A stretch of DNA of 64,000 nucleotides from Anaeramoeba ignava BMAN (taxonomy: Eukaryota > Protista > Anaeramoebae): the NCBI GenBank assembly GCA_028826165.1, contig JAPDFW010000074.1, forward strand, positions 1 to 64,000. Reading direction: 5' to 3'. Both the position numbers and the translations under genes were made by a program. The stretch's first letter is position 1. Every line of letters begins with the position of its first letter. The notes beneath the pieces were generated by a model that had not been told where the DNA came from, searched no databases, and was given only the letters and a program-made list of their open reading frames with translations. Positions 7,759-61,600 of the stretch are shown in pieces.

Positions 7759-9153
7759 TTAAAGTTCTTTTTCAGATTTTAAATCATATTCAATTTTTGA
7801 TTGATTTTGTGAATTATTTTGTTTTTGATTAAACAAATAAACTCTACCTTTATGTGAATAAATTTTTGGAGCACTAATTATTAAATAATTATCTGAAATT
7901 AAAACAGTAAATCCAAATAAATCATTTTGTTTCCCATTATTTGCAGTTAATATTTGGATTTGATTCCATTTATTTTCATTTTCATTTTTTTGGAAAATAT
8001 AAGCTTTGCCTTGTTCTTCATTATCTCCAACTTTTGCATAAGGAGCTCCAATTAAAAGAATATTACCATCTTTGGAAATTGAAATACTAAATCCAAGCCG
8101 ATCATTTTCTTTCCCATCATTTGAAGTTAAAATTTGGATTTGATTCCATTTATTTTGATTTTGATTTTTTTGGAAAATATAAACTTTTCCTTGTTCTTCA
8201 TTATCTCCAACTTTTGCATAAGGAGCTCCAATTAAAAGAATATTATCATCTTTGGAAATTGAAATACTCTCTCCAAACCAATCATTTTCTTTCCCATCAT
8301 TTGCAGTTAAAATTTGGATTTGATTCCATTTATTTTCATTTTCATTTTTTTGGAAAATATAAACTTTTCCTTGTTCTTCATTATCTCCAACTTTTGCATA
8401 AGGAGCTCCAATTAAAAGAATATTATCATCTTTGGAAATTGAAATACTAAATCCAAATAAATTATATTGTTTCCCATCATTTGCAGTTAAAATTTGGATT
8501 TTATTCCATTTATTTTCATTTTCATTTTTTTGGAAAATATAAACTTTTCCTTGTTCTTCATTATTCTCAAATATTGCATAAGGAGCTCCAATTAAAAGAA
8601 TATTATCATCTTTGGAAATTGAAATACTAAATCCAAATAAATCATTTTGTTTCCCATCATTTGCAGTTAAAATTTGGATTTGATTCCATTTATTTTCATT
8701 TTCATTTTTTTGGAAAATATAAACTTTTCCTTGTTCTTTATTATCTCCAACTTTTGCTCGAGGAGCTCCAATTAAAAGAATATTATCATCTTTGGAAATT
8801 GAAATACTCCATCCAAACCAATCATTTTGTTTCCAATCATTTGCAGTTAATATTTGGATTTGATTCCATTTATTTTCATTTTCATTTTTTTGGAAAATAT
8901 AAACTTTGCCTTGTTCTTCACTATTCTCAAATATTGCATCAGAAGCTCCAATTAAAAGAATATTCTCATCTTTGGAAATTGAAATACTAAATCCAAATAA
9001 ATCATTTTCTTTCCCATCATTTGCAGTTAACATTTGGATTTGATTCCATTTATTTTCATTTTGATTTTCATTTTTTTGAATTGAAAAAAGAAAAATTAAT
9101 AATAAAATTAATAAGAATTGAATAAAGAAAGTTGATTTTTGAATTGTTTTCAT
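7759..9153 (-). CDS. Secretory FG-GAP repeat beta-propeller protein, 7 repeats (copy 1)
   Basis: Start MKTIQK (ATG at 9153, shared with the paralogs), hydrophobic signal, 7 repeats of ~60 aa (LTANDG..ND.FG.SISIS..NILLIGAP...QGKVYIF), C-terminus KSEKEL. Confidence 0.85.
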   Translation of the reverse strand: MKTIQKSTFFIQFLLILLLIFLFSIQKNENQNENKWNQIQMLTANDGKENDLFGFSISISKDENILLIGASDAIFENSEEQGKVYIFQKNENENKWNQIQILTANDWKQNDWFGWSISISKDDNILLIGAPRAKVGDNKEQGKVYIFQKNENENKWNQIQILTANDGKQNDLFGFSISISKDDNILLIGAPYAIFENNEEQGKVYIFQKNENENKWNKIQILTANDGKQYNLFGFSISISKDDNILLIGAPYAKVGDNEEQGKVYIFQKNENENKWNQIQILTANDGKENDWFGESISISKDDNILLIGAPYAKVGDNEEQGKVYIFQKNQNQNKWNQIQILTSNDGKENDRLGFSISISKDGNILLIGAPYAKVGDNEEQGKAYIFQKNENENKWNQIQILTANNGKQNDLFGFTVLISDNYLIISAPKIYSHKGRVYLFNQKQNNSQNQSKIEYDLKSEKEL

Positions 9154-9530
9154 TTTGTTTTTAAATTTATTATTTTTATTATTATTATTAAAAAGAAAAA
9201 TGAAAAATGAAAAAATTTTTAAATTCAAAAAGAAAAATGAAAAAGGAAAAAGTGGAAAAGGAAAATTTAATCTTTTTATTTCTTTTTTTGTCTTTTGTTT
9301 TAATTTTTTAAAATGAAAAAAAATAGAAAAAGAAAAAAAAAGAAAAAGTGGAATCTTTTTGATAAAGAATTTAAGTAAAAATTTGAATTTGAATTTGAAT
9401 TTGAATTTGAATTTGAATTTGAATTTGAATTTGAATTTGAATTTGAATTTGAATTTGAATTTGAAAATGGAATTAATAATCTTTTTTTTCTCTTTAATTT
9501 TGAATATTGAATTTTGAATTGAAAAATTAT

Positions 9531-11869
9531 TTAAAGTTCTTTTTCAGATATTAAATCATATTCAATTTTTGATTGATTTTGTGAATTATTTTGTTTTTGA
9601 TTAAACAAATAAACTCTGCCTTTAAGTGAATTACTTATTGGAGCACTAATTACTAAATAATTATCTGAAATTAAAACAGTAAATCCAAATAAATCATCTT
9701 CTTCTCCATTATTTGAACTTAACATTTGGATTTGATTCCATTTATTTTGATTTTGATTTTTTTGGAAAATATAAACTTTGCCTTGTTTAATATTATTTTG
9801 AAAATCCAAAAGAATAGTTCCAATTAAAAGAATATTCCCATCTTTGGAAATTGAAATACTCTCTCCAAACCAACCATTTTCTTTCCCATCATTTGCAGTT
9901 AAAATTTGGATTTGATTCCATTTATTTTCATTTTCATTTTCATTTTCATTTTTTTGGAAAACATAAACTTTGCCTTGTTCTTTATTATTCCCAACTTTTG
10001 CACCAGAAGCTGAAATTAAAATAATATCCCCATCTTTGGAAATTGAAACACGAAATCCAAATAAATCATTTTCTTTCCCATCATTTGCAGTTAAAATTTG
10101 GATTTGATTCCATTTATTTTCATTTTGATTTTTTTGGAAAATATAAACTTTGCCTTGTTCTTCATTATCTCCAACTTTTGCATAAGGAGCTGAAATTAAA
10201 AAAATATTCTCATCATTGGGAATTGAAATACTCTCTCCAAAATGATCATTTTCTTTCCCATCATTTGCAGTTAATATTTGGATTTGATTCCATTTATTTT
10301 CATTTTGATTTTTTTGGAAAATATAAGCTTTGCCTTGTTTATAATTATCTCCAACTTTTGCATAAGGAGCTCCAATTAAAATAATATCCCCATCTTTGGA
10401 AATTGAAACACTATATCCAAAATGATCATTTTCTTTCCCATAATTTTCAGTTAATATTTGGATTTGATTCCATTTATTTTCATTTTCATTTTTTTGGAAA
10501 ATATAAGCTTTGCCTTGTTCTTCATTATCACCAACTTTTGCATAAGGAGATCCAATTAAAAGAATATTCTCATCATTGGAAATTGAAATACTCTGTCCAA
10601 ACCAATCATATTCTTTCCCATAATTTTCAGTTAATATTTGGATTTGATTCCATTTATTTTCATTTTGATTTTTATTTTCATTTTCATTTTGATTTTTTTG
10701 GAAAATATAAACTTTGCCTTGTTCAATATCGCTGTCAAAATTAAAAAAAGGAGCTCCAATTAAAAGAATATTCTCATCTTTGGAAATTAAAATACTAAAT
10801 CCAAAATGATCATTTTCTTTCCCATAATTTGCAGTTAAAATTTGGATTTTATTCCATTTATTTTCATTTTGATTTTTTTGGAAAATATAAACTTTGCCTT
10901 GTTCTTCATTATTCTCAACTTTTGCATAAGGAGCTCCAATTAAAAGAATATTATCATCTTTGGAAATTGAAATACTCAATCCAAAATGATCATTTTCTTT
11001 CCCATCATTTGCAGTTAACATTTGGATTTGATTCCATTTATTTTCATTTTGATTTTTATTTTTTTGGAAAATATAAACTTTTCCTTGTTTATAATTATCA
11101 CCAAATTTTGCACCAGGAGCTCCAATTAAAAGAATATTCTCATCATTGGAAATTGAAATACTCTCTCCAAAAAAATCATTTTGTTTCCCATCATTTGCAG
11201 TTAATATTTGGATTTGATTCCATTCATTTTCATTTTCATTTTTTTGGAAAATATAAACTTTGCCTTGATTATAATTATCACCAACTTTTGCAAGAGCTGA
11301 AATTAAAATAATATTCTCATCTTTGGAAATTGAAATACTCTCTCCAAAATGATCATTTTGTTTCCCATCATTTGCAGTTAACATTTGGATTTGATTCCAT
11401 TTATTTTGATTTTGATTTTGATTTTTTTGGAAAATATAAGCTTTTCCTTGTTCTTCATTATTCCCAACTTTTGCATAAGGAGCTCCAATTAAAAGAATAT
11501 TATCATCATTGGAAATTGAAATACTCAATCCAAAAAATCATTTTGTTTCCCATCATTTGCAGTTAAAATTTGGATTTGATTCCATTTATTTTCATTTTGA
11601 TTTTTTTGGAAAATATAAACTTTGCCTTGTTCTTCATTATCACCAACTTTTGCATAAGGAGCTCCAATTAAAAGAATATTCTCATCTTTGGAAATTGAAA
11701 TACTCACTCCAAAAAAATCATCTTCTTCTCCATAATTTGAAGTTAATATTTGGATTTGATTCCATTTATTTTCATTTTCATTTTCATTTTTTTGAATTGA
11801 AAAAAGAAAAATTAATAATAAAATTAATAAGAATTGAATAAAGAAAGTTGATTTTTGAATTGTTTTCAT
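9531..11869 (-). CDS. Secretory FG-GAP repeat protein, 12 repeats (copy 2); one frameshift near 11530
   Basis: ORFs 11525-11869 and 9531-11528 join across a T homopolymer (codons for D-F-F-G). Same repeat unit; C-terminus ISEKEL. Confidence 0.82.
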
Positions 11870-12253
11870 TTTGTTTTTAAATTTATTATTATTATTATTA
11901 TTTTAAAAAATTTTGAAAAGAAAAAAATGAAAAAAAAAATGAAAAAAAAATTTATTTTTTTAATTTTTTTAAATTTTGAAATAAAAGATTAAAAATGGAA
12001 AAAAAATTGGAAAAAAATGATAAAAAAAAGTGGAATCTTTTTATTTAAATTTTGTTCTCTTTTGTTTTAATTTTTAATTTTTTAAAATTGAAAAGAAAGA
12101 AAAAAGAAGAAAAAGTGGAATTTTTTTGATAAAGAATTTAAGTAAAAATTTGAATTTGAATTTAAATTTAAATTTGAAAATGGAATTAATAATCTTTTTT
12201 TTCTCTTTAATTTTAAATTGAATTTTAAATTGAATTTTGAATTGAATAATTAT

Positions 12254-13693
12254 TTAAAGTTCTTTTTCAGATTTTAAATCATATTCAATTTTTGATTGAT
12301 TTTGTGAATTATTTTGTTTTTGATTAAACAAATAAACTCTGCCTTTATGTGAATAACTTATTGGAGCACTAATTACTAAATAATTATCTGAAATTAAAAC
12401 AGTAAATCCAAATAAATCATCTTCTTCTCCGTTATTTGAACTTAACATTTGGATTTGATTCCATTGATTTTCATTTTGATTTTGATTTTGATTTTGATTT
12501 TCATTTTGATTTTTTTGGAAAATATAAGCTTTGCCTTGTTTAATATCGCTGTCAAAATTAAAAAGAGGAGCTCCAATTAAAAGAATATTACCATCTTTGG
12601 AAATTGAAACACTAAATCCAAAATGATCATTTTCTTTCCCATAATTTGCAGTTAAAATTTGGATTTGATTCCATTTATTTTCATTTTCATTTTGATTTTT
12701 TTGGAAAATATAAACTTTTCCTTGTTCTTTATTATCTCCAACTTTTGCTCGAGGAGCTCCAATTAAAAGAATATTCTCATCTTTGGAAATTGAAATACTC
12801 ACTCCAAAAAAATCATTTTCTTTCCCATCATTTGCAGTTAACATTTGGATTTGATTCCATTCATTTTCATTTTCATTTTGATTTTTTTGGAAAATATAAA
12901 CTTTTCCTTGTTCTTCATTATCTCCAACTTTTGCACCAGGAGCTCCAATTAAAAGAATATTCTCATCTTTGGAAATTGAAATACTCACTCCGAATCCATC
13001 ATATTGTTTCCCATCATTTGCAGTTAACATTTGGATTTGATTCCATTCATTTTCATTTTGATTTTTTTGGAAAATATAAACTTTTCCTTGTTCTTTATTA
13101 TCTCCAACTTTTGCACCAGGAGCTCCAATTAAAAGAATATTCTCATCTTTGGAAATTGAAATACTAAATCCAAAATAATCATTTTCTTTCCCATCATTTG
13201 CAGTTAAAATTTGGATTTGATTCCATTTATTTTCATTTTCATTTTTTTGGAAAATATAAACTTTTCCTTGTTCTTTATTATCACCAACTTTTGCATAAGG
13301 AGCTCCAATTAAAAGAATATTATTATCTTTGGAAATTGAAATACTAAATCCAAAATTATCATTTTCTTTCCCATCATTTGCAGTTAACATTTGGATTTGA
13401 TTCCATTCATTTTCATTTTGATTTTCATTTTGATTTTTTTGGAAAATATAAACTTTGCCTTGTTCTTCATTATCCTCAAATATTGGACCAGGAGCTCCAA
13501 TTAAAAGAATATTCTCATCTTTGGAAATTGAAATACTAAATCCAAAATGATCATTTTGTTTCCAATCATTTGCAGTTAACATTTGGATTTGATTCCATTT
13601 ATTTTCATTTTCATTTTTTTGAATTGAAAAAAGAAAAATTAATAATAAAATTAAGAATTGAATAAAGAAAGTTGATTTTTGAATTGTTTTCAT
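12254..13693 (-). CDS. Secretory FG-GAP repeat beta-propeller protein, 7 repeats (copy 3)
   Basis: Intact ORF with the same leader, repeats and KSEKEL terminus. Confidence 0.85.
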   Translation of the reverse strand: MKTIQKSTFFIQFLILLLIFLFSIQKNENENKWNQIQMLTANDWKQNDHFGFSISISKDENILLIGAPGPIFEDNEEQGKVYIFQKNQNENQNENEWNQIQMLTANDGKENDNFGFSISISKDNNILLIGAPYAKVGDNKEQGKVYIFQKNENENKWNQIQILTANDGKENDYFGFSISISKDENILLIGAPGAKVGDNKEQGKVYIFQKNQNENEWNQIQMLTANDGKQYDGFGVSISISKDENILLIGAPGAKVGDNEEQGKVYIFQKNQNENENEWNQIQMLTANDGKENDFFGVSISISKDENILLIGAPRAKVGDNKEQGKVYIFQKNQNENENKWNQIQILTANYGKENDHFGFSVSISKDGNILLIGAPLFNFDSDIKQGKAYIFQKNQNENQNQNQNQNENQWNQIQMLSSNNGEEDDLFGFTVLISDNYLVISAPISYSHKGRVYLFNQKQNNSQNQSKIEYDLKSEKEL

Positions 13694-20999: not shown

Positions 21000-23900
21000 T
21001 TAAATCATTTCAATTCCTCCTGATTGTTGAAGCTCTTTTTCTTTTTTTTTGATTATACTTTTAATACTCTTTTTTTGTTTCTTCATCAAAACAACAACAA
21101 CAATAATTGCTGCAATAACAACAACTGGAATAACAATTCCCATAACAATTATTGGTGTTTTTGATGAACTAGCACTTGTTTGAGTTGGAATAGAAGGCAC
21201 GAGTGAGGTTGTTGAATTAATTCCTGAATATTCACTTCCAAGACAATTTTCATCAGCTGATGCAACAACCCAAATAGTATATTCTTCTTCTCCATTTAAT
21301 CCTGAGGCTGAATAAAAAGTTGTAGATTTGGGTAAACAGATAGAAACTATTCCATAACGAAATGAATATCTGGCCAATCCAGATGATAAAATCAATGCAT
21401 CCCAAGTGCAAACAAATCCATAATTTATTGAATAACAATTTAATGAAGTAATATTTCCTAATATCACTCTTGTTGAAGTTATTGAACTTGGCAATCCGAA
21501 ATATTGAGGTTCACAATCTGAATCTACACATCCTCGAATTGAAATATTATATTGAACATTCCCTGCTATTTCACTTAATGTTCCAATTACTTCATTTCCA
21601 CTTAAATCAAGAGATGTGAAATTTTGCCAATTTGTTCCATTATCAAGTGAAATTGAATAATTATTAGCATTTGATACTTTTGTGAAATTTAATTCAATTT
21701 CTTCAATTTTGGGAATTGTTTCATAAATTGTTGGAACTTCTAAATTAGAAGTTGTAATTGAAGTTGTTGAGTTAATTCCTGAATATTCACTTCCAAGACA
21801 ATTTTCATCAGCTGATGAATAAACTGAAATTTCATAATATTCTTCGGGAAGTAACAAGGAAATTGAAACACTTGTTGTTAAATTTGTTAAACAAATTGTA
21901 GTTGAATTGTAATTGAATGAATATGCTTGTAATCCAGATGATAAAACCAATGCATCCCAATTACATTCAAACCCAAAAGGTAATGCTGAACAATTTAATG
22001 AAGTAATATTTCCTAATATCACTCTTGTTGAAGTTATTGAACTTGGCAATCCGAAATATTGAGGTTCACAATCTGAATCTACACATCCTCGAATTGAAAT
22101 ATTATATTGAACATTCCCTGCTATTTCACTTAATGTTCCAATTACTTCATTTCCACTTAAATCAAGAGATGTGAAATTTTGCCAATTTGTTCCATTATCA
22201 AGTGAAATTGAATAATTATTAGCATTTGATACTTTTGTGAAATTAAATTCAATTTCTTCAATTTTGGGAATTGTTTCATAAATTGTTGGAGCAATTAAGT
22301 TCCCAGTTGTAATTGAAGTTGTTGTAATGTCTCCACAATTACCATTTGAAGGACATGCTGAAACATTGATTTGATATTCTTGATTTGGGAATTGAGCTTT
22401 GAAATGTTGATTTGTTGAATTTGATTGATAATTTCCTGAATCATCTTGAGAAATTGCTTGATAAGTAAAATTATAATAATCTGGGATTGAACAATTAATT
22501 GGTTGATCCCAACTACAATCAATATCTAATAAATTTGAAATTGAACATGAAAGATTTGGAACTTGGGCAAAAAGTATTGAAATTGATGATTCACAAACTT
22601 CTCCTTTATCATCTCCTTCGCACTCCAATGTTCTACATCCCCAAATTGAAATATTATAATCATATCCACAGTTTATATTCTCCAAAAGATATGAAAGTGA
22701 AGAATTATCAACTGAAAAGAAAGATATTGAATCAGGATCAGATTGATTAAAATAAGAAAGATTATAATGATCAAGATGAGCAACTCCTTCATCAACTTGT
22801 ACATTTGGATAATCCCAATTAGCATTAATTGAATAATCTGAAGGATTTGATAATTGGAAATCTTTTACAGAATCAATTCTTGTTGTTAAATTAATGGAAG
22901 AAGAAGGTTCACCACAGCTCATTGTTTCATTATAACAAGCTCGAATTTGAATTGAATAATATTCATTTCCAGTAATATTATCATAAATGGAAGAATTAAA
23001 TTGTTGATAATAAACATTCCCATCTTCAAGAATTGGAGAATCGATATCAATCCAATCATATCCATAATTAATTTGATATTTCAAAGTTGGAGGAATTTCA
23101 GTTTCATCCCAATAGCAATCAAATGATGAAAAAAAAGATGAGCAATTAAGAATATTAACTTGAGGAATGAGATAATGTTGATAAATAAATCCTTGTTCTC
23201 CATGTTGAGATCCAATAGCAGTAAAATTCTTATAAATTGAAACAGAATATCCAAAATCGGTAACAGAAGATTGAGTGAAAACTTGTACTTCATTCCAAAA
23301 TGTTCCATTATATCTGTAAATGAATCCTTGTTTTGTGTCAATAGCTCCAACAACAAGAGAATCATTATAAACTGAAAGACTCCATCCAAAACTTGAAGAT
23401 CCAGGTCCATTGATAATTTGTTCTTGATTCCAATATGTTTCATTGTATCTGTAAATATATGCTTGTTTTGGACCAGCAGCTCCAATAGCAAGTGCATTTC
23501 CATAAACTGAAACAGAATGACCAAACCAGGATAGTGCTACACTGAAACTTTGCTCTTCATTCCAAAATGTTCCATTATATCTATAAACAAATGCTTGACT
23601 TGTTTGATAAGTTCCTACAGCAATAACATCATCATAAACTGAAACACTCGATCCAAAATTTGTGACTGATTTCGTAATAATTTGTTCTTGATTCCAAAAT
23701 GTTCCATTATATCTATAAACAAATACTCGAGTGTCAGCATAAGTTCCAACAACAGTAACATTTTCATAAATTGAAACAAAATATCCAAATTGTCCAGCAA
23801 CTTGAGAGATCATTTGTTCTTCATTCCAATAAGTTCCATTATATCTGTAAACATCTACTTTATATGCATCCAATCGGTTTCCAATAACAAGAGCATCTTT

Positions 23901-24248
23901 ATAAACTGAAACACTCCATCCAAAATGAGTGCCTGGCTGATAGATATTTTGTTCCAGCTCAAAATTTGTTCCATTATATCTGTAAACAAATACTTGAGCT
24001 ACACCCTCAGCTCCAATAACAAGAACATCTTCATAAACTGAAACAGAGTTTCCAAAATATCCTGAACCTGAATAGTTGTTTATTAAACTCCAAAACCAGC
24101 CTTCGTCTGGAGTAGAATAATATCTTGTTGTTCCTATTTCTGCTTGTATTGTTGATATTAATGATGAAATGGATTTTGGTTGAGTTTGGATTGATTGAAT
24201 TAAGAAAATATTTATAATTAAGAAGAAAAAGAAAATATTTGATTTCAT
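21000..24248 (-). CDS. Type I membrane protein: FG-GAP-like beta-propeller, fibronectin-III-like repeats, TM helix, short basic tail
   Basis: Signal peptide; about 7 FG.SVSVY...IGA...YRYNGT.W repeats; FN3-like W...Y...Y.I.(I/V)R(A/G)C modules; TM IIVMGIVIPVVVIAAIIVVVVLM. Confidence 0.8.
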   Translation of the reverse strand: MKSNIFFFFLIINIFLIQSIQTQPKSISSLISTIQAEIGTTRYYSTPDEGWFWSLINNYSGSGYFGNSVSVYEDVLVIGAEGVAQVFVYRYNGTNFELEQNIYQPGTHFGWSVSVYKDALVIGNRLDAYKVDVYRYNGTYWNEEQMISQVAGQFGYFVSIYENVTVVGTYADTRVFVYRYNGTFWNQEQIITKSVTNFGSSVSVYDDVIAVGTYQTSQAFVYRYNGTFWNEEQSFSVALSWFGHSVSVYGNALAIGAAGPKQAYIYRYNETYWNQEQIINGPGSSSFGWSLSVYNDSLVVGAIDTKQGFIYRYNGTFWNEVQVFTQSSVTDFGYSVSIYKNFTAIGSQHGEQGFIYQHYLIPQVNILNCSSFFSSFDCYWDETEIPPTLKYQINYGYDWIDIDSPILEDGNVYYQQFNSSIYDNITGNEYYSIQIRACYNETMSCGEPSSSINLTTRIDSVKDFQLSNPSDYSINANWDYPNVQVDEGVAHLDHYNLSYFNQSDPDSISFFSVDNSSLSYLLENINCGYDYNISIWGCRTLECEGDDKGEVCESSISILFAQVPNLSCSISNLLDIDCSWDQPINCSIPDYYNFTYQAISQDDSGNYQSNSTNQHFKAQFPNQEYQINVSACPSNGNCGDITTTSITTGNLIAPTIYETIPKIEEIEFNFTKVSNANNYSISLDNGTNWQNFTSLDLSGNEVIGTLSEIAGNVQYNISIRGCVDSDCEPQYFGLPSSITSTRVILGNITSLNCSALPFGFECNWDALVLSSGLQAYSFNYNSTTICLTNLTTSVSISLLLPEEYYEISVYSSADENCLGSEYSGINSTTSITTSNLEVPTIYETIPKIEEIELNFTKVSNANNYSISLDNGTNWQNFTSLDLSGNEVIGTLSEIAGNVQYNISIRGCVDSDCEPQYFGLPSSITSTRVILGNITSLNCYSINYGFVCTWDALILSSGLARYSFRYGIVSICLPKSTTFYSASGLNGEEEYTIWVVASADENCLGSEYSGINSTTSLVPSIPTQTSASSSKTPIIVMGIVIPVVVIAAIIVVVVLMKKQKKSIKSIIKKKEKELQQSGGIEMI

Positions 24249-26625: not shown

Positions 26626-26659
26626 AATCAAAAAATTTTTTCATTTTTTTCATTTCAAA

Positions 26660-27385
26660 ATGGAAAATTATTTAAATTTAGAAAAACTTTCAAATGATTT
26701 AAAAAATTTATTTCAAAATCAAAATCAAAATGAAAATCAAAATCAAAATGAAAGTTATTTTGATTTTCAAATAATTTGTGAACAAAATAAAACTTCATTT
26801 AAAACTCATAAATCAATTCTTTCATCAAGAAGTCAATATTTTAAATCTCTTTTTAATTCAAAAATGAAAGAATATCAAGAAAATAAATTAATTCTAAAAG
26901 ATGTTTCAAGTTCAATTCTATCTTCAATTTTGAATTATTTTTATTCAGGAAAAATTGAAATTAATTTAGAAAATGCAATTCAAATTTTAATTTTTTCATC
27001 AAAATATTTAATTGATGAATTAATTCAATTTTCATCAAATTTTATCAAAAAGAATTTACAATTTGAAACTATTATTGATATTCTTAAATTATCTGAATCA
27101 ATGAACTTAAATCAATTAACAGATTCTTGTTATAAATTTATTTCACAAAATTTTGAAGAATTTTCTAAAACTTCATTTTTTCTTGAACTTGAAGAAAATC
27201 ATTTAAATTCAATTTTATCAAATGATGAAATTCCAATAAATGAATTTGAACTTTTTCAAATGATCAAAAAAAAAAGAAATGCAAAATTATTTTGTGATTT
27301 TTTTTCTTTCTTAATTTGGATTTCAAAAAAAATGTTAAAACTGAATCAAATTTCTGATTATTTGTGTTGGGTTTGGAGAATTTGA
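26660..27385 (+). pseudogene. 3'-truncated duplicate of the BTB-BACK-TLDc gene at 35470
   Basis: Near-identical to 35470-36070 up to INEFELFQ (~27260), then runs into unrelated sequence (the 3' flank of the convergent gene). TLDc is absent. Confidence 0.7.
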
Positions 27386-27386
27386 T

Positions 27387-30300
27387 TTAATTCATTCTAA
27401 ATTGAGGATCATAAATTTCTTCATATAATTCATTCGCTAAATCTGCTAAATTTGGGTTTGATTGATTAAATTGAAAATAATCAATTGCTTTATCTAATTC
27501 TTTAATTGTTTCTTTTGTAATTTCAATTCCTTCTTGAATTTGATTTGAATAAACCCAATATTTCAAAATTTGGAATGCTTGATCACTTATTCCACTCAAA
27601 TCGGAAACTTTATTTGAGGTATCATTTGTTACTGTCAAAAACATGGATCTGAATAAATCACTTCTGGCTATCAAAATTAATTTATGGAATTTGATTTCTT
27701 CTGCATTTTTCTCAATAATGAAATCTTTGGTCGATTCATCATAATACATTTCTTCCATCGTTTCTCCTATTGATTCATATAAATTAAATTCGAATTGAAC
27801 TTCTTCTTTTAATTTTTGTGATTCAATTTTGATATTTCCGTAGATTAATTCAAATATTTGATTAGCTTCTTCAAAGGTTTTTTTTGAAATTAATTGTTTA
27901 AATTCTTCCATTTGACTCCCAATTCTGAAATAAACAATTAATTTATGTGCTTCAATCATTTCTCCATTAACTGTAGGAAAAGAAATATCACAAAATTCTT
28001 TCCTTCTGTAAAATTCAATTAGATCTTCTTCAAGACTTGAATAAAAAGATGAATAAAGAAACGAGGCTTCATTTCCACAATAAATATGGTAATTGGATAT
28101 ATCATATAATATTTCTGGAAGGTCAATATAAAATATTGTAAATTGAAATTTATTTAGTGTTTTTTTGATTGGATGCTTTACACTTTCTCCAAATCCGAGC
28201 AGCTTTCCATTTGTTGTTAATACTAATGTATGATATCGCCCCACTGAAATGGTATCAATATCATTATTTTCAAATAAGGGATATTTCAATTCAGTAAATT
28301 CTCTTGTAAGTTTTTTATTTTTTTGTCCAAGTCCATTGCACATATAATGGCCGCATGAATATAATTTTCTTTTTTGATTTTCATCTTCAATCAGCATAAT
28401 TGAATGAAATATCCCCATTTGAATATCAATTATTTTTCCTTTCGGGATATTTTTAACTTGTAATAGTTGTGTGATTTTTGATACTTCTCTTATTCCTAAT
28501 CCAAGTTGTCCGAAATCATTAGATCCACATGAAAACAATTCATGATTTAAAGTTGTAAGAAAAACCCCTTCTGAATTACTTCCTGAAAATATTTTAGAAA
28601 CATTTCTCATCATTAAAATGGGAATTGGTGTTTTTTTCAATTTGAAATAATCATATCCAAGTTGTCCAAATTGGTTTGAACCCATTCCAAGAGCATTTTC
28701 ATTTGAACTTAATAAATAAACAGAATCTTTTCCACAAACAATGTCTTTGATCATTCTATCATTTGAATCTTGAATTAGCGATGAAACATTACTAAATTTA
28801 TTTGGATTTGTGGATTTGATTTCTTTCCCTTTCACATATACATCGCCTTCCAAAGTTAAAATTGATTCGATATATCCTCCAACAGTGACTTTTTTGATTT
28901 CAATCCCTTTTTTAATTTCAATTTTTTGTATTTTTTCATTTTCATTTTCTCTTTTTGAATCTATCAACTTTGAATTTAATTGTTCAAATAATTCTCCATT
29001 TTGATAAAGGAAATTTTTGAAACGAGTTGAAGTATTGATTTGTTTAATTTGAAATTCATTTCGATTTTCATTTTCATTTTCATTTTCATTTTCATTTTGA
29101 GGTTGAGATTCAATTGGTTCCATTCTAATCTTTTGAAAAGGATTAAAAATGTTTGAAGGAAACATTGTGATATCAAATTGCCAAATATCATTTGGTTTTT
29201 CTTTTAATTTTTCTATTATTTTTTTTCAAAAAAAATTTCAAGTGATTAAGAGGTGATTTGATAGAAAAAAGATTTTTTTGGTTATATTTTGAATTTACCC
29301 TTTTTCAATTTTTTGATTCTTTCGATCCAAATATCAATTTTTGACGGAAAACTTGGAAGATCAAAAAATCGAGATTCGTATTGTTTCAGTTGTTCAATCG
29401 CCTCAAATCCTTTAGCTTTAATTAATTCAATTTGATTCTCTAGTGTTAATTTCAGTTTTTTTTTTCATCCCAAATTACTTCTCTTTGATTCTGTAATTTT
29501 TTATTTTTTTTTGAATTGATTACCATCTGAAAGACTAATATTCATTAGCGCTCGGAATCCAACCCTTTGGATTTGGATGGCACCTGGGAAATTATCCATT
29601 GATTTTATTATTGTTTCAATTCCTTTTTGTGTTCGAATTTCAATTTTCTTTTCTAAATTTTTTTTTGAAAGAAATCCTCATGATAATTCAATTTTCTTAT
29701 GTTTTTTGCTCGAAAAAAATCTTTTTACCTTCATGAGAAGAAGAATAATGAAATAAAGCTAAACATCCAGAACGTTGAATATCTTGATCAATTGGGAAAT
29801 TATTCATTGATTTGATAATAGTTTGAATTCCTTTTAATTTTCCAATTTCATCCCTATTTTCTGTTTTTATTTTGATTTTATTATTTATTACACAAAAAAA
29901 AAGGAAATTAAATCAAAATCAATTTTAAGTTTTGTTGAAATATAATTTTGAAATTTGAAATTTTGTTTTCATTAAAATTTACCTTCATTATAAACAGAAA
30001 TATTTGCTAAAGCTGAGCATCCATATTTTTGAATATCTTGATCGATTGGGAAATTATTCATTGATTTGATAATAATTTCAATTCCTTTTAATTTTACAGC
30101 TTCATTTACATTTCCTGATTTTATTTTGATTTTATTATTTATTACACAAAAAAAAAGGAAATTAAATCAAAATCAATTTTAAGTTTTGTTGAAATATAAT
30201 TTTGAGATTTGAAATTTTCTTTTCATTAAAATTTACCTTCATTATAAGCAGAAATGATCGCTAAAGTTAAACATCCATATTTTTGAATATCTTGATTAAT

Positions 30301-33300
30301 TGGGAAATTATTCATTGATTTGATAATAATTTCAATTCCTTTTAATTTTCCAATTTCATTTACATTTTCTGATTTATATTTTGATTTTATTATTTATTAC
30401 ACAAAAAAAAGGAAATTAAATCAAAATCAATTTTAAGTTTTTTTGAAATATAATTTTGAAATTTGAAATTTTCTTTTTATTAAAATTTACCTTCATTATG
30501 AGCAGAAATATTTGCTAAAGCTAAGCATCCAGAATGTTGAATATCTTGATTAATTGGGAAATTATTCATTAATTTGATAATAATTTCAATTCCTTTTAAT
30601 TTCCTAATTTCATTTTGATTTTCTGTTTTTATTTTTATTTTATTATTTATTACACAAAAAAAAGGAAATTAAATCAAAATCAATTTTAAGTTTTGTTGAA
30701 ATATAATTTTGAAATTTGAAATTTTCTTTTTATTAAAATTTACCTTCATTATTGTGAGCAATATTCCCTAAAGCTCCTGATCCATATTTTTGAATATCTT
30801 GATTAATTGGGAAATCATTCATTGATTTGATAATAATTTCAATCCCTTTTAATTTTCCAATTTCATTCGTATTTTCTGTTTTTATTTTGATTTTATTATT
30901 TATTACACAAAAAAAAAAGGAAATTAAATCAAAATCAATTTTAAGTTTTGTTGAAATATAATTTTGAAATTTGAAATTTTCTTTTCATTAAAATTTACCT
31001 TCATTATAAGCAGAAATGATCGCTAAAGTTAAACATCCATATTTTTGAATATCTTGATTAATTGAGAAATCATTCATTAATTTGATAATAATTTCAATTC
31101 CTTTTAATTTCCTAATTTCATTTTGATTTTCTGTTTTTATTTTGATTTTATTATTTATTACACAAAAAAAAGGAAATTAAATCAAAATAATTAGTTTTTT
31201 TGAAATGAAATTTTGAAATTTGAAATTTTGTTTTCATTAAAATTTACCTTCATTGTTGTCAGCAATATTTGCTAAAGCTAAGCATACATATTTTTGAATA
31301 TCTTGATTAATTGGGAAATTATTCATTAATTTGATAATAATTTCAATTCCTTTTAATTTCCTAATTTCATTTTGATTTTCTGTTTTTATTTTGATTTTAT
31401 TATTTATTACACAAAAAAAAGGAAATTAAATCAAAATTAATTAATTTTGAAATGAAATTTTGAAATTTGAAATTTTGTTTTCATTAAAATTTACCTTCAT
31501 TGTTGTGAGCAATATTTGCTAAAGCTGAACATCCAAAATGTTGAATATCTTGATCAATTGGGAAATTATTCATTGATTTAATAACAATTTCAATCCCTTT
31601 TAATTTCCTAATTTCATTTGCATTTTCTGATTTATTTTGATTTTATTATTTATTACACAAAAAAAAAAGGAAATTAAATCAAAATCAATTTTAAGTTTTG
31701 TTGAAATATAATTTTGAAATTTGAAATTTTGTTTTCATTAAAATTTACCTTCATTATAAGTAGAAATAATTGCTAAAGTTAAACATCCATATTTTTGAAT
31801 AATTTGATTAATTGGGAAATTATTCATTGATTTGATAATAGTTTGAATTCCTCTTAATTTTACAATTTCATTTACATTTTCTGATTTATTTTTATTTTAT
31901 TATTTATTACACAAAAAAAAGGAAATTAAATCAAAGTTAATTATTTTTGAAATGAAATTTTGAAATATGAAATTTTGTTTTCAATAAAATTTACCTTCAT
32001 TATGAGTAGAAATAATCGCTAAAGCTGAACATCCATTTTGTTGAATACCTTGATTGATTGGGAAATTATTCATTGATTTGATAATAATTTCAATCCCTCT
32101 TGATTTTACAGTTTCATTTACATTTTCTGTTTTTATTTTGATTTTATTATTTATTACACAAAAAAAAGGAAATTAAATCAAAGTTAATTATTTTTGAAAT
32201 GAAATTTTGAAATTTGAAATTTTGTTTTCATTAAAATTTACCTTTATTATGAGTAGAAGCAATCGCTAAAGTTAAACATCCATATTTTTGAATATCTTGA
32301 TTAATTGGAAAATCATTCATTGATTTGATAATAGTTTGAATTCCTTTTAATTTTCCAATTTCATTCCTATTTTCTGTTATTTTGATTTTATTATTTATTA
32401 CACAAAAAAAAGGAAATTAAATCAAAATTAATTAATTTTGAAATGAAATTTTGAAATCTTTTTATTATTGTTTTATTTTCAATAAAATTTACCTTCATTG
32501 TTGTCAGAAATATTCCCTAAAGCTAAACATCCATTTTGTTGGATATCTTGATTGATTGGGAAATCATTCATTGATTTAATAATAATTTCAATCCCTTTTA
32601 ATTTCCTAATCTCATTTTTATTTTCTGATTTATTTTGATTTTATTATTTATTACAAAAAAAAGGAAATTAAATCAAAGTTAATTAATTTTGAAATGAAAT
32701 TTTGAAATCTTTTTATTGTTTTATTTTCATTAAAATTTACCTTGATTATTATGAGCAATATTCCCTAAAGCTGAACATCCAAAATGTTGAATATCTTGAT
32801 TAATTGGGAAATCATTCATTAATTTGATAATAATTTCAATTCCTTTTAATTTCCTAATTTCGTTTACATTTTCTGATTTATTTTGATTTTATTATTTATT
32901 ACACAAAAAAAAGGAAATTAAATAAAAGTTAATTAATTTTGAAATATTTTTATTATTGTTTTATTTTCAATAAAATTTACCTTCATTGTTGTCAGAAATA
33001 TTCCCTAAAGCTGAACATCCATTTTGTTGAATACCTTGATTATTTGGGAAATTATTCATTGATTTAATAACAATTTCAATCCCTTTTAATTTCCTAATCT
33101 CATTTTTATTTTCTGATTTATTTTGATTTTATTATTTATTACAAAAAAAAAAGGAAATTAAATCAAAGTTAATTAATTTTGAAATGAAATTTTGAAATCT
33201 TTTTATTGTTTTGTTTTCAATAAAATTTACCTTGATTATTATGAGCAATATATCCTAAAGCTGAACATCCATTTTGTTGAATAGTGTGATTATTTGGGAA

Positions 33301-35406
33301 ATTATTCATTGATTTGATAATAACCCCAATCCCTTTTAATTTCCTAATCTCATTTTTATTTTCTGATTTATTTTGATTTTATTATTTATTACACAAAAAA
33401 AAGGAAATTAAATCAAAATTAATTAATTTTGAAATGAAATTTTGAAATCTTTTTATTATTGTTTTATTTTCAATAAAATTTACCTTGATTATTATGAGCA
33501 ATATTCCCTAAAGCTGAACATCCAAAATATTGAATAGTGTGATTATTTGGGAAATTAGTCATTGATTTGATAATAACCCCAATCCCTTTTAATTTCCTAA
33601 TCTCATTTTGATTTTCTGATTTATTTTGATTTTATTATTTATTACACAAAAAAAAAAGGAAATTAAATCAAAGTTAATTAATTTTGAAATGAAATTTTGA
33701 AATCTTTTTATTGTTTTGTTTTCAATAAAATTTACCTTGATTATTATGAGCAATATATCCTAAAGCTCCACATCCATTTTGTTGAATATCTTGATTATTT
33801 GAGAAATTATTCATTGATTTAATAACAATTTCAATCCCTTTTAATTTCCCTATTTCATTCGTATTTTCTGATTTATTTTGATTTTATTATTTATTACACA
33901 AAAAAAAAAGGAAATTAAATCAAAGTTAATTAATTTTGAAATGAAATTTTGAAATCTTTTTATTGTTTTGTTTTCAATAAAATTTACCTTGATTATTATG
34001 AGCAATATTCCCTAAAGCTGAACATCCAAAATATTGAATAGTGTGATTATTTGGGAAATTAGTCATTGATTTGATAATAACCCCAATCCCTTCTGATTTC
34101 CTAATCTCATTTTGATTTTCTGATTTATTTTGATTTTATTATTTATTACACAAAAAAAAAGGAAATTAAATAAAAGTTAATTATTTTTGAAATGAAATTT
34201 TGAAATCTTTTTATTGTTTTATTTTCATTAAAATTTACCTTGATTTGTAGATAGACGCCCTAAAGTTAAACATCCATTTTGTTGAATACCTTGATTGATT
34301 GGAAAATTAATCATTGATTTAATAATAACCCCAATCCCTTCTGATTTCCTAATCTCATTTTGATTTTCTGATTTTGTTTTTATTTTATTATTATTAGAAA
34401 CCAAAAAGGAAAAAGAACCAAAATTAATGGATTTTGAAATCTGGAATTTTGTTGTTTTGTTTTTCTCAATAAAATTTACCTTTATTATCTTGACAAATAT
34501 TTACTAAAGCTGCACATCCATTATGTTGAACAATTTGGTTAATTGGAAAATTAATCATTGATTTGATAATAACTTCAATCCCTTTTAATTTCCTAATCTC
34601 ATTTTGATTTTCTGATTTTGTTTTTATTTTTTATTATTAGAAACCAAAAAGGAAAAAGAACCAAAATTAATGGATTTTGAAATCTGGAATTTTGTTGTTT
34701 TGTTTTTCTCAATAAAATTTACCTTTATTATCTTGCGCAAAAACAGCTAAATTTGCACATCCAGTAAATTGTATATCTTGATTATTTGGAAAATTAACCA
34801 TTGATTTGATAATAACTTCAATCCCTTTTAATTTCCTAATCTCATTTTGATTTTCTGATTTTATTTTTATTTTTTATTATTGCAAACCAAAAAGGAAATA
34901 TATGTTTAATCTGTTTTCGAATTATTTTGAGAAGCAAAAAAATACTCTCGTTTCTGGCAATCATTCCTAAGGCGATAGATCCATTGAATTGAATCTTTGC
35001 ATTATTCGGGAAATTATTTATGGCAGAAATAATGGATTGAATCTCATCCGAATTGAATTGAAGAAGGGGTAATAATTCTGTTGATTTTGTTTGAAAAAGA
35101 ATTTAAATCCAAAAAAAAATATTTGTCACTATTACAAATTAATTTGGAAATTTACGTCCATTTTGGAAAAATTTGTTGTGTAATTCATCGATTGTTTCCT
35201 CAACTATTTCTTCTTCTTTTGGGGCAATTTTCAGGAGATTTATTAATTCTTTTATTTCAGAATTCACTATCAATTAAAAATTTCGTTCAAAAAGAAAAGC
35301 GTTAGAAAAAAATATTTTAATTTAAATAATTGTTGAATTTGATTTTGGGTTTACCTGGATTTTCTGAATTTAAAACAGAGAGAAGATGAGCTAAATCAAT
35401 ATTCAT
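27387..35406 (-). CDS. 27-exon armadillo-like repeat + RCC1 + BTB-BTB protein (~1,700 aa); one ARM-like repeat per exon
   Basis: Exons: 35406-35355 (MNIDLAHLLSVLNSENP), 35266-35156, 35077-34946; then 21 repeat exons from 34854-34723 down to 29860-29729; cap exon 29652-29524; linker exon 29439-29299; last exon 29212-27387, which continues into the RCC1 (GSNQFGQLG, GSNDFGQLG, SVGRYHTL) and BTB (FCDISF..EAHKLI; DFII..FHKLILIARSDLFRSMF) ORF. All introns are GT-AG and phase 1, and the frame stays open throughout. Confidence 0.85.
29729..34854 (-). repeat. 21 tandem ~250-bp units, each a 132-nt exon (one is 129 nt) plus a ~110-125-nt intron
   Basis: Donors AAG|GTAAATTT and acceptors (A/T)CAG|(A/G)AAAT recur about every 250 nt; exon boundaries were checked for every unit. 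Confidence 0.92.
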
Positions 35407-35469
35407 GTAGCTTTTTAATTCAAAAGCGAAAAAAATGAAAAAAAATTTTTTCATTTTTTTCATTTCAAA
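35407..35469. promoter_or_regulatory. 63-nt bidirectional promoter region with back-to-back TCATTT initiator-like motifs
   Basis: Divergent ATGs at 35406 (-) and 35470 (+). The spacer contains AAAAATGAAAAAAAATTTTTTCATTTTT, an imperfect palindrome of the motif found upstream of most genes here. Confidence 0.55.
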
Positions 35470-36914
35470 ATGGAAAATTATTCAAATTTAGAAAAACTTT
35501 CAAATGATTTAAAAAATTTATTTCAAAATCAAAATCAAAATGAAAATCAAAATGAAAATGAAAGTTATTTTGATTTTCAAATAATTTGTGAACAAAATAA
35601 AACTTCATTTAAAACTCATAAATCAATTCTTTCTTCAAGAAGTCAATATTTTAAATCTCTTTTTAAAACTAAAATGAAAGAATATCAAGAAAATAAATTA
35701 ATTCTAAAAGATGTTTCAAGTTCAATTCTATCTTCAATTTTGAATTATTTTTATTCAGGAAAAATTGAAATTAATTTAGAAAATGCAATTCAAATTTTAA
35801 TTTTTTCATCAAAATATTTAATTGATGAATTAATTCAATTTTCATCAAATTTTATCAAAAAGAATTTACAATTTGAAACTATTATTGATATTCTTAAATT
35901 ATCTGAATCAATGAACTTAAATCAATTATTAGATTCTTGTTATAAATTTATTTCACAAAATTTTGAAGAATTTTCTAAAACTTCATTTTTTCTTGAACTT
36001 GAAGAAAATCATTTAAATTCAATATTATCAAATGATGAAATTCCAATAAATGAATTTGAACTTTTTCAATCAATAATAAAATGGGGAAAATATAAATCAA
36101 ATATTAATCAAGAAATGAATAAAAAAGAAAAAGAAAAATTACAAAAACAAATTTCAAATATTATCAATAAAATCAGATTTATTCATTTTTCAGAACAAGA
36201 ATTTGAAGATATTTTGAAAGAAGATTTAATTCCAAAACAAATTTCAGAAAAATTAACTCAATTCCAAAAACTTCAAAAACAAAATGATGAAAAAGAATTA
36301 AATCAATTCATTGAAAAAGAAAATCAAAATTCATTAATTTTCAAAACAAGATTTAGATTAGATTCAGAAATTATACAAGAAAAAGAACATTCCAAGAAAT
36401 TAAAAGAATGGATAAATGATAATGAATTCTTTTCCAAAATGAAAAAAGGATATTCAGCAAAAGAGATGGATTTAATTGTAAAAAATGGCATGATAAAGTT
36501 GATAATAAAGGAAAAACATTAGTTATTATCAAAACCAAAGATAATTTTATTTTTGGAGGATTTACTCAAATTGGATGGATTTCAGGAAAAGATGGAGAAC
36601 ATATTGAAGATTCAAATGCATTTATTTTTTCATTAAGAAATGATAAGAATGATAGAAAACCAGAGAAATTTTTCATTAGAAAAGGGAAAGAAAAATATGC
36701 AATTCAATATTTTTCATCAATATGGGGTCCAGTTTTTGGAAAAAATGGACTTGATTTTTGTATTGGAATTAATTTACAACCTGGTGATGCAACTTTTGGT
36801 CGGAGTTACAATTTGCCTAAAGGAATTCATTATGATACAGATGAAGCTAAAAATTATTTGGCTGGTTCTCTTAGTGAATGGGTTGTTGATGAACTTGAGA
36901 CTTATTTTATTTAA
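35470..36914 (+). CDS. BTB-BACK-TLDc protein (1-nt frameshift near 36460)
   Basis: BTB (DFQIIC..FKTHKSILSSRSQYFKSLF) and BACK (NEFELFQSIIKW). After the frameshift, TLDc motifs follow (DGFNCKKWHDKVDNKGKTLVIIKT..IFGGFT...AFIFSL...GPVFG...VDELETYFI, stop at 36914). Confidence 0.85.

Positions 36915-56330: not shown

Positions 56331-57929
<1,599 letters not shown>

Positions 57930-60228: not shown

Positions 60229-61600
<1,372 letters not shown>

Follow-up and report, generated by a model that had tools for sequence, protein, structure and literature searches.

An exon-per-repeat armadillo array joined to RCC1 and BTB domains in Anaeramoeba ignava, a candidate diversifying ubiquitin-ligase adaptor

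The anaerobic amoeba Anaeramoeba ignava BMAN (Metamonada) carries sulfate-reducing bacterial symbionts (PMC11550330). The first 64,000 nucleotides of its contig JAPDFW010000074.1, in the following called the window, contain on the minus strand a predicted gene of 27 exons, in which an array of armadillo (ARM) repeats, encoded one repeat per exon, is joined to an RCC1-like propeller and two BTB domains. The reading preferred here, to which a probability of roughly 0.6 is assigned, is that of a cytosolic adaptor whose ARM solenoid and RCC1 propeller bind target proteins, whose tandem BTB domains most likely recruit a cullin ligase, and whose repeats are diversified at the DNA level. The gene model, the folds, the gene family, the hypervariability of the binding groove, the mosaic nature of the repeats and the differing repeat numbers emerge directly from the analysis and comparison of the DNA and its predicted products.

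Gene model and armadillo array

Scanning for AG...GT pairs enclosing an open frame yielded exactly 21 exons between 34854 and 29729 (minus strand), 20 of them 132 nt and one 129 nt long, with phase 1 at both ends in all 21. This recovers the 21-unit array that had been described in an earlier reading of the window, made from the sequence only. The introns between the repeat exons are 108-123 nt long. An in-frame stop is present in all introns of the gene but one (19 of the 20 within the array), and the lengths of the array introns are distributed over all three frames (7/6/7); the array region is therefore readable only when spliced. The complete splice model comprises 5,160 nt, corresponding to 1,719 amino acids, with the terminal stop codon as the sole stop and with all 26 introns being GT-AG and in phase 1. 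The cap exons and a 141-nt linker exon thus carry the frame into the RCC1-BTB part without a stop, as had been stated, and they do so in the paralogues L013 and L017 as well. Gaps of 76-86 nt between exons fit the modal intron length of this genome (76 nt), which has an A+T content of 80.65%.

The former description of the units as near-identical applies to the introns (mean identity 85%, with 93% for neighbors, decreasing to 78% at 15 units apart), but not to the exons, which share 71-98% identity (mean 82%). The repeat peptide quoted as an example in that reading turned out to be a composite that equals no single repeat.

A structure model of the paralogue P0002, calculated from its single sequence, displays three helices per 43-44 amino acids, with values of the predicted local distance difference test (pLDDT) mostly between 70 and 93 and good confidence for residues 1-250. 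In Foldseek this model gave designed ARM proteins, Vac8 and APC as best matches, and a profile of the window exons matched designed ARM proteins, the ARM region of LRRK2, Vac8 and ZYG11B, while Pfam matches of single array exons were weak (E 0.004-0.15). These observations support the assignment to armadillo-type helical repeats already made from the sequence, and a predicted solenoid of about 23 repeats, one per exon. In armadillo repeats a conserved asparagine of helix 3 holds the peptide backbone; this residue is present in 11 of the 21 window repeats, with Ile, Tyr, Val, Arg or His found in the others.

Evidence for a single gene

Related loci were searched in the whole A. ignava BMAN genome (42,843,398 bases in 147 contigs), the smallest of three genomes in Table S1 of PMC11550330. 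Twenty genome stretches were read, with about 20 further loci lying outside this sample. In the L013 paralogue, 5′ exons of 52, 111 and 132 nt are followed by 13 repeat exons, an exon of 141 nt and a long last exon, 18 exons in all, every one bounded by GT-AG introns and with the frame open throughout. The L017 paralogue likewise has an open frame across 13 called repeat exons, the 141-nt linker and the last exon, and the linker exon together with the start of the last exon was found again at five loci. Between equivalent flanking exons, the repeat number differs among these paralogous loci, with 22 repeat exons in the window gene versus 13 in L013; further paralogues contain 13-14 (L017) and at least 20 (contig C63).

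The 592-amino-acid RCC1-BTB frame has an ATG of its own at 29165, downstream of the splice acceptor at 29212. The stretch from 29212 to 29165 is conserved and aligns to the first residues of stand-alone RCC1-BTB proteins, and the structure model places the first propeller strand upstream of this ATG, with low confidence. Four NCBI protein models (P0002, P0006, P0124 and P0194), which are predictions and not independent transcripts, also join ARM repeats to RCC1-BTB, and P0006 corresponds exon by exon to L002 with equivalent linker junctions. The only transcript-derived protein found, P0159 from EukProt, is of a type with the BTB domain first; in it, exons of the family are spliced repeat by repeat. 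P0159 passes from contig C74 to contig C24 in the middle of an exon (C74:233.7-234.2 kb, C24:230.4-230.9 kb), at a stretch common to both loci, which is most simply explained by an assembly chimera, a real recombinant being the other option. A comparison of P0159 with P0271 as a case of exon skipping was rejected, since P0159 is a chimera of two loci. Altogether, the comparative evidence that the array and the RCC1-BTB part form one protein-coding gene is strong.

Variation of the binding groove

Eight positions of the repeat (26, 29, 30, 33, 36, 37, 40 and 41) were examined, which we take from designed-armadillo numbering to form the groove, with the register obtained from the exon profile matches. 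As this set was fixed after the window alignment had been seen, the other loci serve as a blind test. Two of the positions, 29 and 33, have been named as peptide contacts (bioRxiv 10.64898/2026.03.18.712636). In the window repeats, entropy was 1.92 bits at the groove positions versus 0.58 elsewhere, and when averaged within 16 loci all eight groove positions were among the ten most variable ones. Other exposed faces of the repeat stay conserved, whereas the groove of helix 3 varies. Nineteen distinct groove signatures were counted in the 21 window repeats, and 244 in 271 exons.

Using a model in which the synonymous rate is shared between groove and remainder, a type of test that recombination can inflate, the ratio of nonsynonymous to synonymous rates (dN/dS) in the window was 2.47 for the groove and 0.53 for the rest (p 6e-6 for the groove against 1), and under the same model it ranged from 1.4 to 11 for the groove and exceeded 1 in all eight loci. 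A comparison that requires no tree found nonsynonymous differences (pN) at the groove to be more frequent than synonymous differences (pS) in either of the two non-groove regions, and this held for each of the 16 loci. These are model-dependent signs of diversifying selection on the peptide-binding groove, and they are in line with the tunable recognition solenoid that had been suggested.

Mosaic structure of the repeats

Four-gamete incompatibility inside the exon climbs with distance from 0.21 to 0.59 (permutation p 0.004). An identical 3′ part is shared by repeats 16 and 19, whose 5′ halves have different nearest relatives, and repeats 15 and 18 have only the 5′ half in common. Neighboring introns differ at 3.8% of sites versus 20% at synonymous exon sites, a comparison limited by the A+T-rich introns. 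All 21 window exons are nearest to another exon of their own locus and not to any exon sampled outside it; repeat turnover is therefore local here. By these sequence criteria, the repeats are mosaics, recombination having acted both between exons and within them. The in-frame shuffling of repeat exons proposed previously is supported by these signs of recombination, but has to be extended from moves of whole exons to exchanges inside them. A search for inverted repeats that could act as pairing elements for exon skipping gave only AT-rich, chance-like pairs (71-74%), and neither inverted nor dead spare exons were present in the window array. Exon skipping would be allowed by the frame, but nothing in these data points to it.

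The RCC1-BTB-BTB part

Exon 27, modelled with 107 homologues (mean pLDDT 78), folds into a seven-bladed propeller followed by two BTB-like units, and the propeller structurally matches HERC2, RPGR and RCC1. On exon 27, Pfam detects only the second BTB domain (BTB2) on its own, which also matches KBTBD4 (E 3e-6) and KLHL26 (E 2.5e-4). The domain order RCC1-BTB-BTB put forward earlier is hence backed by Pfam and the model for the propeller and BTB2, and by the model and the paralogues, not by Pfam, for the first BTB domain (BTB1). Residues 588-606 of exon 27 are predicted to form short helices, which could represent a short 3-box. Neither a signal peptide nor a membrane helix was recognized by inspection of the protein. 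The A. ignava genome contains eight cullin genes, and binding of the BTB pair to CUL3 is plausible by analogy with IBTK and Btb1 (PMC4447969).

The family in the A. ignava genome

The locus described in the earlier reading is real, yet it belongs to a very large family and is no single oddity. With one exon as query, 1,231 candidates were obtained in the genome, of which the best 150 were already spread over 28 contigs, and a strict 30-nt exon motif gave 676 matches versus none for the reversed control. At the other loci of the 20 stretches, 305 of 319 callable exons are in phase 1 at both ends, mostly with lengths of 129 or 132 nt. The order ARM-RCC1-BTB-BTB occurs in at least seven genes, namely the window gene, two on contig C35, one each on C63 and C103, and those of P0124 and P0194. 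Other ARM arrays are located behind BTB(-BACK) plus a coiled coil, RING-kinase-SH3 or a U-box, or occur with a small GTPase. A quick tree of the RCC1-BTB part requires two changes for the ARM label and places P0194 among stand-alone proteins, which hints weakly at more than one fusion between ARM and RCC1-BTB parts.

Hundreds of stand-alone RCC1-BTB genes are present (697 matches), and about 3,700 BTB candidates were counted in the genome. In the stand-alone RCC1-BTB-BTB paralogues (P0010-P0120, about 590 amino acids) the BTB domains are conserved (mean entropy 0.29), and the propellers are hypervariable at positions about one blade apart. These proteins are candidates for a second, larger receptor family.

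Close protein matches to the window gene all come from A. ignava, and related ARM repeats are found in many other eukaryotes at lower identity. Length-limited database searches returned no ARM-RCC1-BTB protein outside A. ignava, and no A. flamelloides protein was among the named matches, which given the length limit does not prove absence. No database protein found contains more than eight close-type repeats, in comparison to at least 20 in the DNA. Long ARM arrays therefore seem to be under-represented in public protein models, and the family is easy to miss.

Several of the related loci deserve mention on their own. At C35:140-158 kb (L006-L008) there are several tandem ARM-array genes with much larger arrays, and at C64:517-532 kb (L011-L012) about 65 repeat exons follow each other consecutively. 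Two genes consisting of a coiled coil and an ARM array lie tail to tail as an inverted duplication at C6:33.5-43.4 kb (L019). The ARM-RCC1-BTB paralogue at C63:192-204 kb (L001-L002) has introns that are long and irregular, several of its exons are frameshifted, and the NCBI model at this place holds only the last few exons; the cause is either decay or nanopore assembly error. Related ARM repeats in long intronless open frames, possibly ancestral or retroposed forms, were seen at C108:136.7-137.4 kb and C126:689.5-690.0 kb. An ankyrin-array plus BTB gene at L013:7625-9901 (plus strand) immediately follows the ARM-RCC1-BTB paralogue of L013.

Proposed function and alternative explanations

According to the adaptor reading, the 250-nt units would misalign, leading to unequal crossing-over and gene conversion, with conversion tracts whose ends lie in the homogenised introns or in the 5′ half of the exons, which is conserved. 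In this way the array could grow, shrink and be reshuffled at the DNA level over generations, and the phase-1 symmetry would leave every recombined product in frame. Selection would preserve the scaffold and favor change at the helix-3 groove. The product, provided that the locus is expressed, would probably be a substrate receptor with two sensors, the ARM groove and the RCC1 face, which delivers bound proteins to a cullin ligase for ubiquitination. The occurrence of the same ARM exon on BTB, RING and U-box proteins is counted in favor of the ubiquitin-ligase part of this reading. Since the binding face changes fast, a moving, foreign or selfish target is suggested, for which symbiont effectors, viruses and mobile elements are candidates not distinguishable from one another. 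In the cytosol, such a protein would encounter only material that has passed the membrane of the symbiosome, the dedicated compartment in which Anaeramoeba keeps its bacterial symbionts (PMC11550330).

Several observations weigh against this reading. With branch lengths free per partition (IQ-TREE), the groove dN/dS of the window was 0.87, an estimate from an unstable procedure in which several runs stayed at 1.000, and recombination inflates site-model dN/dS tests. BTB2 has T-N-D opposite the L-K-E of KBTBD4, which we take to be the cullin-contacting motif, and the motif thus looks altered. Pfam gave no match to a BACK domain after BTB2, where only short helices are found. Some arrays are joined to partners other than ubiquitin modules (a small GTPase, or a coiled coil alone), no transcript-derived ARM-RCC1-BTB protein was among the database matches, and the start codons of the array gene and its divergent neighbor are only 63 nt apart.

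Among the alternatives, the one that survives best, though it appears unlikely, is a real fused gene whose array is a by-product of repeat turnover, with unconstrained groove residues drifting and no arms race taking place. The thousands of BTB candidates and hundreds of RCC1-BTB paralogues, taken as general gene-family churn, the frameshifted exons in some arrays and the dN/dS of 0.87 would all be compatible with it. Unconstrained drift is, however, difficult to reconcile with a helix-3 groove that varies while the other exposed faces remain conserved, with a groove pN that exceeds the pS of the remaining exon in every one of the 16 loci, and with a frame that is intact across 27 exons.

It is rather improbable that one gene provides a combinatorial repertoire, with many isoforms per cell formed by skipping symmetric exons or by somatic rearrangement of the array. 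All array exons could be skipped in frame, brown-algal ROCO genes do so (PMC11378527), and P0159 changes locus in the middle of an exon. Yet the splice signals are uniform, the introns short and devoid of specific pairing elements, the window array lacks the inverted or dead spare exons of Ectocarpus (PMC3341825), and the switch in P0159 falls within a stretch common to both loci, as it would in an assembly chimera. Very little credence is given to the most far-reaching version, a within-lifetime repertoire of modular peptide readers generated by exon skipping or recombination and wired to ubiquitin ligases against symbionts or parasites, where each ARM repeat would read one short step of a peptide, in the manner of designed armadillo binders. 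If true, a protist would possess an intracellular immune system of an adaptive-like kind.

A diversifying receptor without a cullin, in which the two BTB domains serve only for oligomerisation or as a scaffold and the protein acts by sequestering its targets or by signalling, is very improbable as well. The altered motif, the degenerate BTB1 and the lack of a BACK domain as well as the kinase and GTPase fusions of the same ARM exon would speak for it, but IBTK/Btb1, with an equal order of repeats, RCC1 and two BTB domains, binds CUL3 through its BTBs (PMC4447969), and independent RING, U-box and BTB fusions all point to ubiquitination. Least probable of all are two separate genes or a silent locus: despite the separate ATG of the RCC1-BTB frame and the finding of no database protein from the window locus at 334-1,918 amino acids, a start at 29165 would lose the conserved first propeller strand after an AG acceptor conserved in four loci, no stop codon terminates the array itself, and the gaps of 76-86 nt match the modal intron.

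Comparison with known systems

In brown algae, the ROCO-LRR and NB-ARC-TPR genes, proposed to be immune receptors, encode one repeat per symmetric exon and display positive selection on the concave ligand face (PMC3341825, PMC11378527), and splice variants have been documented for them (PMC11378527). The array gene resembles them in its symmetric exon per repeat, the variable repeat number among paralogues and selection on the concave face, the last being model-dependent here. It differs in having armadillo repeats instead of LRR or TPR, in an output that is probably a ubiquitin-ligase adaptor and not a GTPase or NTPase, in its occurrence in a unicellular metamonad, and in its short homogenised introns without inverted spare exons. 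With ARM repeats on RCC1-BTB-BTB in place of LRR or TPR on ROC-COR or NB-ARC, it is no member of these families.

IBTK, its Schizosaccharomyces pombe counterpart Btb1 and RCBTB1/2 are CUL3 adaptors (PMC4447969) that the window gene resembles in the succession of an N-terminal repeat solenoid, RCC1 and two BTB domains. IBTK, however, is a conserved single gene whose product contains two ankyrin repeats and a 3-box, has its BTBs set apart from each other and binds its substrate with a long tail, whereas the window gene belongs to a multigene family and has about 23 variable repeats, which are armadillo and not the N-terminal ankyrin repeats of IBTK, adjacent BTBs and a very short tail. In plants, armadillo repeats serve as the substrate-binding part of ARIA/ABAP1 and of U-box-ARM ligases. 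ARMC5 combines ARM repeats with a BTB domain and is a CUL3 adaptor (PMC9226510, PMC9462479). In all of these, as is predicted for the window gene, the armadillo repeats are the part of a ubiquitin ligase that binds the substrate, but these proteins have no RCC1 domain and are not described as exon-per-repeat variable arrays.

In nematodes, F-box and MATH-BTB proteins have expanded into large families of cullin adaptors that evolve by birth and death and whose substrate-binding parts change fast; a function in innate immunity has been speculated for them (Thomas 2006, as cited in PMC12951971). Their diversity arises from duplicated genes and point mutations, in contrast to the modular repeat array inside the window gene. 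In repeat type, the array also resembles Dictyostelium Aardvark and the LRRK2-type ARM (Pfam ARM_LRRK2), and paralogue entries are automatically named 'protein aardvark'. This name is a transfer by similarity; the architecture differs and no beta-catenin-like role is indicated. The working logic of the gene therefore matches that of the algal arrays and the nematode adaptors, while it is a member of none of the families compared, and no published description of the Anaeramoeba ARM-array family was found in the literature searched.

The focus of variation on the groove suggests a fast-evolving recognition system, and hundreds of groove-variable repeat exons, repeatedly fused to ubiquitin-ligase modules, constitute a concrete and testable candidate for a means by which single-celled eukaryotes distinguish a partner from a parasite. 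The family might likewise be regarded as a natural counterpart of engineered modular armadillo binders.

Features of the locus and its neighborhood

Table 1. Predicted gene and exon features in the window, with the evidence for each.
Feature	Position	Strand	Evidence
Whole predicted gene, 27 exons: N-cap, about 23 ARM repeats, linker, RCC1 propeller, BTB1, BTB2	27387..35406	-	Exon scan, frame, paralogue with equal flanking exon sizes
Exon 1, 52 nt, start codon	35355..35406	-	Homologous 52-nt exon in L013
Exon 2, 111 nt, helical N-terminal segment	35156..35266	-	Homologous 111-nt exon in L013
Exon 3, 132 nt, divergent N-cap ARM repeat	34946..35077	-	Homologous 132-nt exon in L013
Exons 4-24, 21 exon+intron units of about 250 nt each, one ARM repeat per exon	29729..34854	-	Exon scan
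5′ ends of the array exons	34854, 34611, 34367 (129 nt), 34119, 33867, 33615, 33362, 33112, 32872, 32624, 32373, 32126, 31880, 31626, 31379, 31130, 30875, 30622, 30368, 30114, 29860	-	
Exon 25, 129 nt, divergent C-cap ARM repeat	29524..29652	-	Matching cap exon in L013 and L017
Exon 26, 141-nt linker: partial repeat and helix	29299..29439	-	141 nt in L013 and L017 too
Exon 27 (29212-27387, 1,826 nt), first part: seven-bladed RCC1-like propeller	28050..29212	-	Pfam, structure model, paralogues
BTB1, degenerate	27747..28001	-	Strands and helices of structure model; conserved in paralogues
BTB2 and short C-terminal helical tail (possible shortened 3-box), stop codon	27387..27737	-	Pfam BTB E 7e-13; match to KBTBD4, KLHL26

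The array gene is bracketed by a direct duplication of 646 nt (97.7% identity; window 26630-27275 and 35440-36081, plus strand), which is made up of the 5′ portion of a BTB-BACK gene. At 26.6 kb the copy is truncated and its frame runs to the stop codon of the array gene, while the copy at 35.5 kb continues; this arrangement looks like a recent insertion or segmental duplication. Elsewhere in the window, tandem FG-GAP repeat genes with 180-nt intronless units and a gene combining FG-GAP with fibronectin-III are located at 7759-13693 and 21000-24248 (minus strand), and two polyubiquitin genes of seven and six units lie at 56331-57923 and 60284-61594 (minus strand).

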